Made by a program: the position numbers and the translations under genes. The notes beneath the pieces were generated by a model, which worked only from the letters and a program-made list of their open reading frames with translations, made no database searches and had not been told where the DNA came from. From Orbicella franksi (lineage: Eukaryota): a stretch of DNA of 64,000 nt. The stretch's first letter is position 1, and each line of letters starts with the position of its first letter. The stretch lies in the NCBI GenBank assembly GCA_964199315.1, contig OZ116703.1:19654001-19718000 (forward strand). Direction: 5' to 3'. This document shows positions 4,578-13,658 of this stretch, piece after piece.

Positions 4578-5267
4578 TTATATAGTGTCTTGTTTAGTGG
4601 GCTTGCGTTTTCTCCAGCCGCTTTTCTCGCTTCTTTCCGCATCCTCTTCCTTTGCCTTTTCTTTCAGCTCTTTCTTTTCAGCTTTCTGTCTTTCCTTCTC
4701 TTCTCCTTTTTCTTTCTTTTTCGCTTTGTCTTCCTCTTTTTTCTTCTCCTTCTCGGTCTTGTCTTTTCCTCCTTTCTCGTGCTCCATGTCGCCCATGGCT
4801 TCCATCGCTTCTTGTCCCGGACTCAATGGTGGAGCAAGACTTTGTCTTTTGGGTGAGCCAGGCACGCCACTCTCTCGTCTCACGTTGGGTGAGCCGGGCA
4901 CGCCACTTTCCCTTCGTCCCTTCTGATCTTTCTTGGTCTTCAACTTATCTTTGATCCTGTGCTGTTTCCTAGGCGAAGCTTCAGAGTCTTCCCCGGGCGC
5001 GGAGACCATGATCTGCGGTGAGCCAGCTCCTTCAATAGAGTGCGCACCCTTTATGCCTGGGACTTGGTACTTATCATAATTTTCCTTTGGCCTGTCGAAC
5101 GAGAACAAAACCACCTCAATGGCGATCAAAATTCCCACCATGTATGGGAAAAAATGAGGCACAAAATATTTGCCGAAGTTCACCGCAAGTGTGGCACATA
5201 TCAAGCCAAAGGCGAGCGAGTGGATCGTGTTTTTCAAAGATCCTTCGATCACTGGTGGTCCGACCAT
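4578..5267 (-). CDS. Intronless two-TM (hairpin) membrane protein A, 229 aa, with SP-rich and K/E-rich disordered tail; unknown function
   Basis: Long ORF; preferred start MVGPP (cacgATGG). Hydrophobic block SLAFGLICATLAVNFGKYF...MVGILIAIEVVLFSF is 15/45 identical without gaps to the ORF at 10261-10641. Confidence 0.8.
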   Translation of the reverse strand: MVGPPVIEGSLKNTIHSLAFGLICATLAVNFGKYFVPHFFPYMVGILIAIEVVLFSFDRPKENYDKYQVPGIKGAHSIEGAGSPQIMVSAPGEDSEASPRKQHRIKDKLKTKKDQKGRRESGVPGSPNVRRESGVPGSPKRQSLAPPLSPGQEAMEAMGDMEHEKGGKDKTEKEKKKEEDKAKKKEKGEEKERQKAEKKELKEKAKEEDAERSEKSGWRKRKPTKQDTI

Positions 5268-7660
5268 CGTGTGGTTAAGCTGATCGCTAAGAATTAACCG
5301 CGATGAAACGAAGCGTTGGTTGTTGTTAACGGTGTAAATGGAAGGCGTTAAGTACAGATGGCACGCTATTAAAATACCATACAACCTGAGCAGTTACGAC
5401 CTGCCAGAGGTTTACAATCAATGGACAAAAGACCACCAGCATCATATCTCGTTTTATTTTGACGCTTGTTAATTATGCAAGAGAACAAACAGGAAAAAAA
5501 ATGAAAACGATGTGTTTCCATTGCCAACTTAAAAAAATTGGAAAAAAATTGGCCAAGACTGTTGAATTTTAATTTCCTGAAAATTTCTCTGTCTACTCAA
5601 ATGACTTGAGGAATGTCTATTTTAACGTGGTAGTCGATGCTTTTTTGGAATTTTATAAAATATAGCGTAAAATGAAAACGTAAATGTAATATAATAAATA
5701 AAGTATTATCGTTGCTCCTTCATCTCCCATGGCTGCACGTTGCTTTTCTTGTCAGGGAAAGTTTTAATAACTATGCTAATGTCCTCCAAAACACGCTAAT
5801 TAATTTCGCTGACAGAAACATTTCAGGCAAGCATAATTATTATGAATACGAAAAGACACTAATGTGGCAATTTGACAAAATGTTAAGCAAAGGGCAAACT
5901 GTGGCCTATGTTATCATGAGTACAGCTCTTAAAGGTCTCCGCTCTTGTCCTGTACAGCCTTGAAGCAAAACAAAAAGTGCCTAAGATGCTAGACAAAGGA
6001 TTCTGAAATACCAATTTATGGCCAACGGCAAGATCTTAAATGGCTGCTCAGTTACCAAGCATGCGGTCAAAACGAAGGGTCGCATTAGACATCGCATACT
6101 GGGAATTTGATCTGTCACGATCTTCGACGCAAACAAGAGATATATAGATGTTATAAGATACTTATTAGAGAGTTTTATTGCAACACATTGGCTAGTGGTA
6201 ACGAACTGTCTGGTTTAGAGAATATTATTTTCAGATTCGTATTAGTACACCTATGGATTCAATTTCATGACAGAAGGCATTTACAAATTAAGCACCTCGA
6301 CTCCATGACTACGTTTCTTTGCTTTTTAACGATCATAAGCGTTATGGATATGATTGCGGTTGAGTGATCTGCTTCGTGTTTTTTTCCAAAATAAGCAGAT
6401 CAACCGAAAGATATGGGGCTTATCATTGATATGTTATCTTATTGTCATCGCTAAAGGTTCCTTCCAGTATAAATATAGCATTTATTTTATCATTTTATTA
6501 TTTTATCACAAGAGTGAAAACTGGAGAAAAGAGCGAATGATATGGAAATTTTCCGACGTCCCATTTCGAACGGTAAAAGAGGAGTATACACCTAAAGTCT
6601 ACAGTTACCGATCAAATTTTCAGGAAATTTTCACATGACTTTCAACCGAAATTTTACGGACTTCTTTGGCTAAAATTAATGGTAAGCACCCTAATACTGA
6701 ATCAATTCGTATTCAAAAAGGAAAGATAAACGCCGTTAGTAGTTCCAAACGAGATTAACATCACATTTCTCTTTACACTCTCGACGCATTTTCAAACAGA
6801 CAGATTAGGAGAATGGAAAAAATGATCAAACTTGGGAAGGTATGTTAATGTACTACAAAATTCTCAGAACTGGCTTTGAAAGGAACGTGGGGAAATTAGT
6901 AAGGAGAAATAAGGTTTTGGTCCTGAACTAAAACTTAAAAAAACGGTAAATACGAGATTGTTGTTAGTTTTGGAAGTTTTGTTTCTCAATGAAGGAAAGA
7001 AGCATTCTTCGCTATTTAATGGGGAGTGAATGTGTCCTTGCACAGCAAAGAGAGAGAGAGAGAATTCTATATCAGTGCCAATATTTTAAGGACTTTATTT
7101 GGCTTACACAGATATCTGTGGTATTGTGTCAACGCTGACTCCCAAACAAAACACTTCATGAGAACTTTTTAACCCATCTGTGAAAATAGTAACAAAAAAA
7201 CGACGAAAGAAAGGTACAACCTTCAAATGACCGCGAAGGACTGTTTATCATCAAAAGCATCACCAATGTCTTATTTTAAAATCCTTTAATTCCGATAAGC
7301 GATCAACCCGCAGTTTCACCTTGACAAGAATTAATGAAAATGATCAAAGTCCAAATACCTGCAAGAGCCACACCCAAAAACAAATAAACCGTAGTTTCGA
7401 GTACACAAGCTGACTTCTAGCAACTTCCCTACTTACATAAAGTGAAGAAATAAAAATTATAAACTGACTGAGTTAAAAAATTGAAGGAGAGAGTATAAAC
7501 TAGCCTATAAAGTTGCGGTTTGAAGTCCTCGCACACCAGTACGTAGAAAGTCTTCACAAATACGAAAGGAATTTTAGGTACGCTCAATGCCACCATAACC
7601 AGAATCAACAACGTCAGTAATATTCCATATACGCGAGCTTTTGGGCAAGTTTTTGCTTCT

Positions 7661-7867
7661 TCAACTAGTCTTTTCTTTATTCTTGTCGGCTTCAGTTACG
7701 GCTTCCTCGGTGTTCTTTTTCCTTCCAAACAAAATGAGCTTGATTACTTTGAATATGGTAAGCAAGATAAATTTGACGCATTTCGTGAAAATCTCCAATC
7801 CGTATGACCACAGAAGCGCGGAGAGGATGGCGAAAATGAAAATGGCAACCAGGCCAACGAGGGACAT
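7661..7867 (-). CDS. Small membrane protein C, 68 aa (TM + amphipathic helix + charged tail); possibly the 5' half of a frameshifted gene
   Basis: aaagATG start, 20-aa hydrophobic helix, amphipathic LEIFTKCVKFILLTIFKVIKLILF and K/E tail. A second hydrophobic ORF continues in the +1 frame to 7429. Confidence 0.5.
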   Translation of the reverse strand: MSLVGLVAIFIFAILSALLWSYGLEIFTKCVKFILLTIFKVIKLILFGRKKNTEEAVTEADKNKEKTS

Positions 7868-11828: not shown

Positions 11829-12045
11829 AAGGTCAACGTAGTGACCAATGGGGCCTGAAGCTTATCTCCGGTTTCCGTAGCTTGTTGCGACTAGGAATGT
11901 TTCTAACCCACCCCTCGCCCCCAACTTCCGATGGACTGATATTCCATTGCAGGGTTACCACCCCCACCCTCTTGCCGCCACCTAGCTAGCAGTTTATTCG
12001 TTAGTTTTCATTTATACATAGAGAGGAACTGTGAGAGTACAAGTG
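11829..12045 (-). mobile_element. Degenerate tRNA-derived SINE fragment
   Basis: Similar to the SINE at 43025-43314 (gcttatctccggtttccgtagc...gcgactagga...gcagggttacc...catttatac...gagagg..ctgtgagagt). Confidence 0.65.
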
Positions 12046-12929
12046 TACTCATTAACGGAATCGGGCCAATAATTGATATGAAAGCGCCAAATCCGATAGA
12101 AAATTCAATCAGAAGAATGAGACTAGCGGACAGAAAATCTACCATGCTGATGGGATCTAGAATAATTCATGCATATTGAAAATTAATTTCCATGGTAATG
12201 TATTTTATACAGTGAATTTCAATTCTTGTAAAGACGCGGGGCTAAAATCATTAAAAAGTAAATTGCTTGTATTGACTGTACTGAAAAAATATTTTCTTTA
12301 AGTTTGGAAAAGCGTTTAAAATATGGTTAATTGAAATTGTATAAGACAAAAAAATCCGTGATGTCAAGCACTTATTGATTTTATTGTTAAGCGATACACG
12401 TGTTGGGACAGACAGATTTGCATTCCTGTATAAAAGCAAACACAAAGCGTCCTCGGGTTATTGTTTTGATGAAAATTCAAAAATATGAATTTTTATTTTC
12501 ACCTCACCCTAAATGCGTGTACTCGTAACAACTAAGCTAAGAAAGGAGACAATTTATGACGGCTAAATAAAAACTGCTGTATATGCCCAGCAACAGTATA
12601 ACAATGTTTAATATCTTGTGGCTATTCCTACACGAGGCAGTAAATATTAATGTCATTGAATGAGATGGAGAGGATTTCCCTGCAAATTCACGTCCATTCG
12701 CTCAAGAGATTTCATTTCTCAATCAAAATGAAACTCCAACAATCTGGCGTTAACAAAACAGTTTCATTTTCTGTGACTGACCTCGGCTGATTCGACATTT
12801 TCGTAGATCAAAATAGCTTAAAGCGAGATTTGTAACTAAACCGTCAAACGTTTGTTTCACATCGATTGTGTTTACCCTATTGACTTTTTTTCTGCTCTAG
12901 TGTATATGATAAATAATTCGCTGGATACC

Positions 12930-13658
12930 TCAGAAACGACCCAAACCGTTCATAGCCTCATCCATCGTTGATTTCACTTCGTAAATCTTCTGTTGTTCGT
13001 CGTAAATCTTGTCCTTCAAGTCGCAGATTTGGCCTTCAAGCCTTCCAATTGTCCTATTCGCTGTTTCACAGCGAATTTCTTCATCCCGCCTTCGCTGCCA
13101 GAGCTCTCGAATTTTATTTTCGCACGCGTCTTCGCGGTCACCTCGCTTTTCTTCGGAAATTGCTAATTTCCGTAGATTTCTACCCACGAACCTGTTCTGC
13201 TCCTCCAGCTCGTTGCGTTTCTCCGCGGCTTCTCTTAAACGGACCCTAAATCGCTCTGTCTCCCGAGTCACAGTCTGCAGTCTTCTCCAGCATTCCGCGC
13301 ACTTGTTCTCGCTGTAATCGGCTGACTTTTCGTATTGTTTAATGGCAGCTTCGAGCTTCTCCATTTTTCGCTCATCCTCGTCTTCCACTTCATTCAACAT
13401 CTTGATCTGCCTGTTTTCTCGCTCATTTCTAGCAAGCTCTTCGCGATAGGCTTTCTCTTTGTCGAAAATGCGATCTTGGACGGCATCTAATTTTCCTTCT
13501 AGCAGCCGTATTCGTCTCTTCAGGGCGTCCACTTCTTTCTCCTTTTCGTCCGCTTCGTAATTCGCGAACGCTAGCTTTTTAATGGCGGATTTTTCCCGTT
13601 CCTCCGCTTGGTCAATTTCGTGCCTTACTTTACTCGTTTTAGCTTTGAATTCTTCCAT
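12930..13658 (-). CDS. Intronless tropomyosin-like coiled-coil protein, 242 aa
   Basis: 242 aa (short cnidarian tropomyosin length) with continuous heptad pattern. Motifs E.EV.AL.RRI.LLE and E.KI.EL; N-terminus MEEFKAK; ttaacATGG start. Confidence 0.85.
   Translation of the reverse strand: MEEFKAKTSKVRHEIDQAEEREKSAIKKLAFANYEADEKEKEVDALKRRIRLLEGKLDAVQDRIFDKEKAYREELARNERENRQIKMLNEVEDEDERKMEKLEAAIKQYEKSADYSENKCAECWRRLQTVTRETERFRVRLREAAEKRNELEEQNRFVGRNLRKLAISEEKRGDREDACENKIRELWQRRRDEEIRCETANRTIGRLEGQICDLKDKIYDEQQKIYEVKSTMDEAMNGLGRF

Follow-up and report, generated by a model that had tools for sequence, protein, structure and literature searches.

Triadin and junctin, in the sarcoplasmic reticulum of muscle, are membrane-anchored proteins with KEKE charged tails, and caldesmon and the myosins VI and X contain ER/K single-alpha-helix spacers. 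Helical hairpins are found in other membrane proteins, such as the reticulon/REEP wedges, the monotopic hairpins of oleosin and caveolin, and ATP-synthase subunit c, which carries a carboxylate in its second helix, while phospholamban, sarcolipin, sarcolamban and DWORF are regulatory membrane micropeptides. In this study, we analysed a row of small genes in the coral Orbicella franksi which recalls each of these systems in some part of its layout and which lies beside a gene for a short tropomyosin. The window, i.e., the whole stretch of DNA that was analysed, is 64,000 nucleotides long and corresponds to C6:19654001-19718000 of a 497-Mb O. franksi assembly, where C6 is the window's own contig (OZ116703.1); coordinates are window positions unless they carry the prefix C6 or the label of another locus. 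The results suggest that the row is probably an old and conserved array, made up of five small genes named A to E, with single-exon coding regions and, where RNA was examined, with transcripts of their own, in which the hairpin proteins and their tails would play the membrane roles described below.

Genes A to D are all on the minus strand and ATG-initiated, and each consists of one open frame. Gene D (12930-13658) has a single-exon coding region for a 242-aa short tropomyosin, gene C (10261-10641) encodes a two-helix hairpin membrane protein of 126 aa, gene B (7661-7867) a membrane micropeptide of 68 aa, and gene A (4578-5267) a hairpin membrane protein of 229 aa. The fifth gene, E, is a paralogue of 87 aa located outside the window, about 22 kb beyond A (C6:19636731-19636994, minus strand; L002 1375-1638). 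The original prediction had described single-exon minus-strand open reading frames (ORFs) at these places, comprising a tropomyosin as the only recognisable protein, two paralogous hairpin membrane proteins and a small membrane ORF, and the cluster was confirmed as described: D alone among the ORFs matches a Pfam family, A and C are related through an N-terminal hairpin of two hydrophobic helices (BLASTP E 6e-8, 34% over 44 aa) and through a joint profile, and the small ORF, B, is conserved and has a hydrophobic predicted helix. The spacing, given earlier as about 2.5-3 kb, measured 2.4 kb for A-B, 2.4 kb for B-C and 2.3 kb for C-D between coding regions. The locus is 98.9% identical to that of Orbicella faveolata (GCA_002042975.1).

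In comparison to the described systems, A is similar to triadin, junctin and the ER/K spacers in that it joins a membrane anchor with an alternating E/K segment of about 50 residues, a helix predicted with modest confidence, and it also adjoins a thin-filament gene; the likeness to triadin and junctin is one of architecture only, with no Pfam or PDB match, and the anchor of A is an N-terminal two-helix hairpin, not a single pass. The hairpin family shares two short-looped hydrophobic helices with reticulon, REEP, oleosin, caveolin and ATP-synthase subunit c, and the helix-2 carboxylate with subunit c as well, and yet A and C were rejected as members of any of these groups, as no Pfam or PDB match and no detectable homology was found. 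In the C-type proteins, lysine and aspartate are found in the loops, and a true transmembrane hairpin is therefore favoured over a monotopic one. B is like the phospholamban-type peptides in its small size, and it has a single predicted helix, its own mRNA of about 1 kb and a history of being missed by standard annotation. In phospholamban-type peptides, a C-terminal transmembrane helix follows a cytosolic regulatory helix, whereas B is reversed, with its charged tail at the C-terminus.

Coding status and gene order of the row

Orthologous ORFs were taken from the coral assemblies L009-L012 and L036, the last of which (Acropora) encodes a protein identical to A. millepora XP_029213422.1. Each of the five genes was intact in 3-5 other coral assemblies, with the synonymous substitution rate (dS) mostly saturated, and B and C were intact in five, with length and start conserved. 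The variable sites of the orthologues of A to E concentrate at third codon positions. Where dS was finite, the ratio of the nonsynonymous to the synonymous rate (dN/dS) was 0.075-0.13 for A, 0.10-0.24 for B, 0.065-0.24 for C, 0.067-0.10 for D and 0.13-0.38 for E. These ratios, which had been proposed as a check on the original prediction, are all in the range of 0.07-0.38 and far below 1, indicating that all five genes are under purifying selection. Proteins identical or nearly identical to A, B, C and D were also found in many public assemblies. The RefSeq annotation of O. faveolata contains A and D, and not B or C; no other gene is called there within 10 kb of A, and B and C are thus unannotated in that genome.

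The absence of B and C from this annotation and their lack of known domains are what would be expected if B, C and possibly E were chance ORFs in non-coding RNA or in untranslated regions (UTRs), with A and D as the only real genes. We regard such a reading as extremely improbable, because B and C stay intact in five assemblies despite saturated synonymous sites, at dN/dS values of 0.07-0.24 and with third-position changes predominating, and because the identity between Orbicella and Acropora is 74% for B, the highest of the cluster, in comparison to 52% for A, 58% for C and 63% for D. In addition, C-type proteins recur in Nematostella and other assemblies, and B and C each have an RNA unit of about 1 kb. 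For B and C, a chance origin is thus very unlikely.

The array reading further draws on gene order. The order D-C-B-A-E is complete and on one strand in L010 and L036 (Acropora), and L011 contains D, C, B and A. L009 contains C, B, A and E, with D on the same strand of that contig, about 6 kb upstream of C. L012 contains C, B and A, and a part of the 3' UTR of D (12352-12686) can be aligned at the outermost end of this locus (L012 151-473). In Stylophora, A (XP_022782002.1) and D are on one scaffold, and the protein model PFX30862.1 fuses D and C, so that D and C are adjacent there too. Taken across these assemblies, the row has been kept since at least the stony-coral ancestor, across the split of complex and robust corals.

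A core of the row was found outside the stony corals. At the Nematostella vectensis locus L013 (OW051996.1, about 12.69-12.71 Mb), a single-exon tropomyosin gene of 242 aa (5625-6353, plus strand) stands together with a C-like hairpin ORF of 109 aa (8212-8541, minus strand), which is apparently unannotated, and with an A-like gene (10001-10684, plus strand; XP_032221058.2). The best match of the Nematostella tropomyosin in this genome is D (E 1e-14 vs 3e-9 for the next), whose own best counterpart in Nematostella is this tropomyosin, the A-like protein matches only A, and in the tree the Nematostella tropomyosin falls with the D clade at a support of 91/79, on long branches. No counterparts of the Nematostella flanking genes (BTB/TLD and ACTMAP-like) were seen between -40 and +64 kb of this window. 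These matches place the core of the row in the ancestor that stony corals share with sea anemones.

Several points weigh against the reading of an ancient array. The orthology of the Nematostella tropomyosin and D has moderate support, given an identity of 32-34% and the long branches; no B-like ORF was seen at the Nematostella locus and the C-like gene there is inverted; and within 10 kb of the A-type gene of the octocoral Xenia there is neither a tropomyosin nor another member of the family. The complete row of five is therefore established for stony corals only, and the conserved linkage that had been proposed as a check was found in Scleractinia and, for the tropomyosin and two hairpin genes, in Nematostella, but not in Xenia. 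Conserved adjacency can also persist by chance or by general synteny, and the comparison comprised one sea anemone and one octocoral. Furthermore, the roles suggested for the tails are read from composition and motifs, and because the libraries are unstranded or in the form of contigs, the strand of the transcripts is taken from the ORFs.

Beyond the row, a dynein heavy-chain gene follows on the opposite strand in both this genome and Acropora. Its C-terminal exons are located just beyond E, about 24-28 kb before the window start (L015, L018), and the same exons were seen at 15700-20300 of L036 and 16000-19400 of L011. This neighbour is thus shared by O. franksi, Acropora and one more coral, which makes the syntenic block larger than the row of five genes. 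The distance from E to A is only 2.5-8.3 kb in other corals in comparison to about 22 kb here, from which it follows that this genome gained about 13-19 kb between A and E. An ORF of 179 aa just beyond A (2250-2789, plus strand), without a Pfam match, may be a mobile-element remnant within this inserted sequence.

The hairpin family, the micropeptide and the tropomyosin

A six-frame search of the O. franksi genome with C identified two further single-ORF members of the hairpin family, E and F, the latter being an unlinked gene of 72 aa at a distance of 3.5 Mb (C6:16088980-16089186, minus strand; L003 1492-1710). The core of the hairpin consists of two hydrophobic helices of about 19 residues and a very short aromatic loop, which contains prolines in the A-type proteins. 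In the alignment, the family is marked by the signature F-G-(L/I)...(T/N)-F-G-K-Y-F...(W/F)-F-x-Y...E-V, with three invariant phenylalanines and a nearly invariant glutamate in helix 2. F of this species is without the helix-2 glutamate, and related F-type database proteins retain it.

The hairpin profile was searched against 1.84 billion representative proteins, and the results showed 37 matches at E <=0.001, which are of A-, C-, E- and F-like types. The members with source names come from Nematostella (XP_032221058.2), Xenia (XP_046856299.1), Acropora, Stylophora, Oculina and Orbicella, and no non-cnidarian name was seen among the named ones, in agreement with the earlier claim that the membrane proteins are lineage-specific. 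The same profile had no match in PDB at E <=1, A, B and C had no family match in Pfam, and the ESM Atlas gave no usable match for the hairpin of A or for B. Together, these comparisons indicate that A, C, E and F arose by tandem duplication within a single undescribed family, in which every named member is anthozoan; the row beside the tropomyosin paralogue was built in part by tandem duplication, namely of A, C and E. Five apparent divergent homologues of C and E (P0063-P0065, P0104 and P0105) consistently show I, F and L in place of T, S and P; they look like translated bisulfite-converted (C-to-T) reads which inflate the apparent diversity, and they were not used as evidence.

Protein A begins with a P-x-I-E-G-x-L-K-x-T-I motif, which is followed by the two hydrophobic helices, the second containing the glutamate, by a Y-x-x-Y/F motif about 7 residues after helix 2, and by the tail. 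Conserved elements of the tail are K-D-Q-K-G-R-R-E-S-G, which fits a basophilic kinase consensus, SP sites, an E-E-K-E-R-Q-K-A-E-K-K block and a terminal G-x-W-R-K-R, and the tail includes an E/K-rich helix. The AlphaFold2 model of A, based on an alignment of 19 sequences, predicted helices at 10-35 and 39-57 with a predicted local distance difference test score (pLDDT) of 74-88 and a long helix at 168-215 with a pLDDT of 50-60, the remainder being disordered and the mean pLDDT being 55; values of 50-60 are typical of charged single helices. Among robust and complex corals, the A orthologues are 61-94% identical over the whole protein and 67-100% identical in the N-terminal 85 residues searched, and the identity to more distant relatives, Nematostella included, is 36-40%.

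The A protein of O. faveolata, XP_020609987.1, belongs to the 90%-identity cluster of A with equal length, and was deposited as 'splicing regulatory glutamine/lysine-rich protein 1-like'. The automatic names of A-type orthologues are inconsistent between species, and include SREK1-like, NOP58-like, DEK3-like, ARL6IP4 and DDB_G0271982. A was rejected as an SREK1-like, NOP58-like, DEK3-like or ARL6IP4 protein, as no RRM, Nop or DEK_C domain of Pfam was matched at E <=1. These names stem from the K/E-rich low-complexity tail and not from homology, the conserved part being the N-terminal hairpin.

The tail of C is basic (isoelectric point 10.5) and rich in alanine and lysine, with four SP sites and a conserved K-Q-E-K-A-A-E-K...A-K-K-A end, and the C orthologues are 83-98% identical in the hairpin region. 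The tail was compared with linker histone H1 and sperm nuclear basic proteins and rejected as either, with no Pfam hit and with likeness only in SP-K and in the A/K-rich composition; C also begins with two hydrophobic helices.

Micropeptide B has one copy in the genome and is laid out as an N-terminal hydrophobic helix, an amphipathic helix interspersed with lysines, and a short tail of charged residues, for which AlphaFold2 predicted one helix at 3-67 with a mean pLDDT of 72 and a hydrophobic first third. Its full-length identity is 57-81% in five other coral assemblies. Two possible assignments of B were rejected. As a divergent paralogue of the hairpin family, it scored 2.5 bits against the family profile, a value reached by 184 of 2000 shuffles, and the hhalign probability was 0.2%, so that its likeness to the family is one of superficial layout only; as a phospholamban or sarcolipin type, it has no Pfam match and its hydrophobic helix is N-terminal. 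The search of Pfam at E <=1 gave only one sub-threshold chance hit for B.

Protein D matched the Pfam Tropomyosin family PF00261 with 141.8 bits (cut-off 38.6), with residues 1-240 on profile positions 1-240 of 242, and it was again above the PF00261 threshold, end to end, in the genome-wide Pfam scan. Two O. faveolata RefSeq proteins, XP_020609975.1 and XP_020609976.1, belong to the 90%-identity cluster of D and have equal length. Across stony corals, the D orthologues are 62-96% identical and share the position of the stop codon, and 12 of them align in 242 columns without gaps, with equal lengths of the protein and of the profile match, which would imply a coiled coil in unbroken heptad register. 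D is like the short (about 242-250 aa) cnidarian and non-muscle tropomyosins in its end-to-end match with no net length change, and it shares the length of 242 aa with its counterparts in corals and Nematostella; it differs from the short tropomyosins in being fast-evolving, with only 32-34% identity to the orthologue at the neighbouring position in Nematostella, and in carrying an invariant C120. D is a bona fide short tropomyosin and a fast-evolving paralogue.

At least nine tropomyosin genes matching PF00261 in one open frame are scattered in this genome (loci L019-L030), which makes the intronless coding region of D unremarkable, a single-exon coding region being shared with most tropomyosin genes of this genome. 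At one tropomyosin locus, on C12 (5.51-5.52 Mb), the sequence is divided among either exons or tandem partial copies. The D orthologues contain a K-C-A-E-C-W motif (D residues 120-123, window 13290-13301), in which Cys120 is invariant, Nematostella included, and Cys123 almost so among corals; tropomyosins do not usually contain a CxxC within a coiled coil.

Transcription units of the row

RNA libraries from many studies contain 50-62% of the sampled words of 4400-13800, and the region of A (4300-5500) is 79-93% present in poly(A) RNA-seq contigs from several studies, single-cell libraries included, among them the study of the runs X32 and X34. Reads and contigs were placed on 7000-12999, using contigs of the runs X1 and X11 and raw reads of the run X24. 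The transcription unit of B (7284-8298, minus strand) is unspliced and about 0.9-1.0 kb long, with contigs at 7284-8158 (X1) and 7300-8298 (X11) and raw poly(A) reads at 7200-8199; a minus-strand AATAAA is located at its 3' end (7285-7290), and the depth is zero at 8400-8599, upstream of the unit. The unit of C (9497-10809, minus strand) is likewise unspliced and about 1.2-1.3 kb long, with contigs at 9497-10689 (X11) and at 9759-10665 and 10655-10809 (X1), with raw poly(A) reads at 9800-10799, and with near-zero depth on both sides. D has the greatest RNA depth within the stretch examined, and its 3' UTR (11989-12929, minus strand) is covered by contigs that run from the coding region down to 12503 (X11) and 11989 (X1). 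For A, the contig L035 from a public run is collinear with the genome and aligns gaplessly to 3723-5419, ending 17 nt past a minus-strand AATAAA at 3740-3745, and is taken as the putative minimum A transcript (minus strand).

The expression that had been proposed as a check was thus observed, for B, C and D as discrete units of poly(A) RNA and for A as poly(A) RNA contigs. No splice joints were found in poly(A) RNA within 7000-12999, and the depth is about zero between units, so that the description of the cluster as intronless holds for the coding regions and for the RNA across this range, while the 5' UTRs of A and D are outside this evidence. The same data bear on the question of whether the ORFs are one read-through or spliced unit, with the Stylophora protein PFX30862.1 representing a real fusion or a polycistronic RNA. 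All genes being co-oriented on one strand would suit such a unit, as would the composition of PFX30862.1 itself (404 aa, P0141, 'Tropomyosin alpha-1 chain'), which follows D to about residue 225 and continues with the sequence upstream of C and the complete C. However, the range without any joint spans the end of the D coding region and C, the RNA falls to about zero depth between the units, the NCBI models of D are a single-ORF protein of 242 aa, and the coral D orthologues end at the same stop, all of which make one read-through or spliced unit highly improbable. PFX30862.1 is a chimeric gene model, and its joint does not exist in the RNA of this coral.

A further transcribed piece lies between C and D (10971-11905), with contigs at 10971-11872 (X1, depth 12) and 11180-11905 (X11, depth 15), but the raw reads of X24 hardly cover it. 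Apart from a repeat of about 80 nt at about 11840-11920, the sequence occurs once in the genome; it holds no ORF of note, and Rfam had no match over 3000-16000. The piece may represent an extended 3' UTR isoform of D or an independent non-coding RNA.

Possible functional link to the thin filament and meaning for coral genomes

Under the reading of an ancient array, the row would persist in that its genes originated next to each other, and they may use local regulatory DNA in common with the tropomyosin gene. The hairpins would span or dip into the membrane with both ends cytosolic, and the divergent tails would be phospho-regulated arms, intrinsically disordered or of the single-alpha-helix type, which would serve as membrane-tethered spacers or as docking sites for partners.

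The original prediction had gone further and proposed a module that links a membrane to actin or chromatin. In the form examined here, the hairpin proteins, perhaps together with B, would be co-expressed with D in one specialised cell type and would tether tropomyosin-coated actin filaments (by the E/K helix of A) or chromatin (by the basic SP/A/K tail of C) to the membrane. The adjacency of a tropomyosin and two hairpin genes, which is common to stony corals and Nematostella while the flanks differ, and the retention of the whole row between complex and robust corals are both consistent with such a module, as are the long charged helix predicted for A and the strongly basic tail of C. On the other hand, the Xenia A-type gene is not beside a tropomyosin and F is 3.5 Mb from any. 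As to co-expression, B, C and D were co-detected in the same bulk RNA libraries, and to this extent only the claim stood; their relative depths differ between libraries. No CArG boxes were found in 4000-15000, and the MEF2-like AT-rich sites there are few, five in number (0.45/kb in comparison to 0.23/kb window-wide), with a placement that is not conserved in other corals. The suggested cell types (sperm, cnidocyte or ciliated cell) are guesses, the physical tethering to actin, tropomyosin or chromatin is hypothetical, and on balance we consider the module unlikely.

A closely related view is that of a conserved and co-regulated cnidarian unit from thin filament to membrane, in which D would work with the lineage-specific hairpin anchors A, C and E and the micropeptide B in one anthozoan cell type, and in which the charged tails of the anchors would dock tropomyosin-decorated actin, or a different polyelectrolyte, e.g., chromatin, onto the membrane. 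If true, this would be a solution without a bilaterian counterpart; we hold it to be quite doubtful. A complex prediction for the D dimer with the tail of A (57-229) gave 0.00 in comparison to the mark of 0.34, at a pLDDT of about 35 for the partner, which is no verdict and was not counted. No papers naming the RefSeq accessions of the A-type or D proteins were found, neither the A accession nor a tropomyosin occurs in the supplements consulted for the Stylophora cell atlas, and a paper on Nematostella muscle mentions tropomyosins only generically.

The analysis is thus a solid finding on annotation and evolution, of moderate interest, and not a demonstrated system. It adds two expressed and strongly constrained genes, B and C, which the reference annotation of an important reef-building coral of the Caribbean lacks, and it corrects the misleading automatic names of the A-type proteins. 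If the functional link is true, the row would represent a lineage-specific coupling of actin and membrane; otherwise, the genes are ordinary tandem duplicates beside an old neighbour. The locus is also a clear case in which gene order survived the deepest divergence among stony corals and, in part, extends to sea anemones, and it defines an undescribed membrane-protein family with four subtypes, which gives a family context for 'dark' coral genes.

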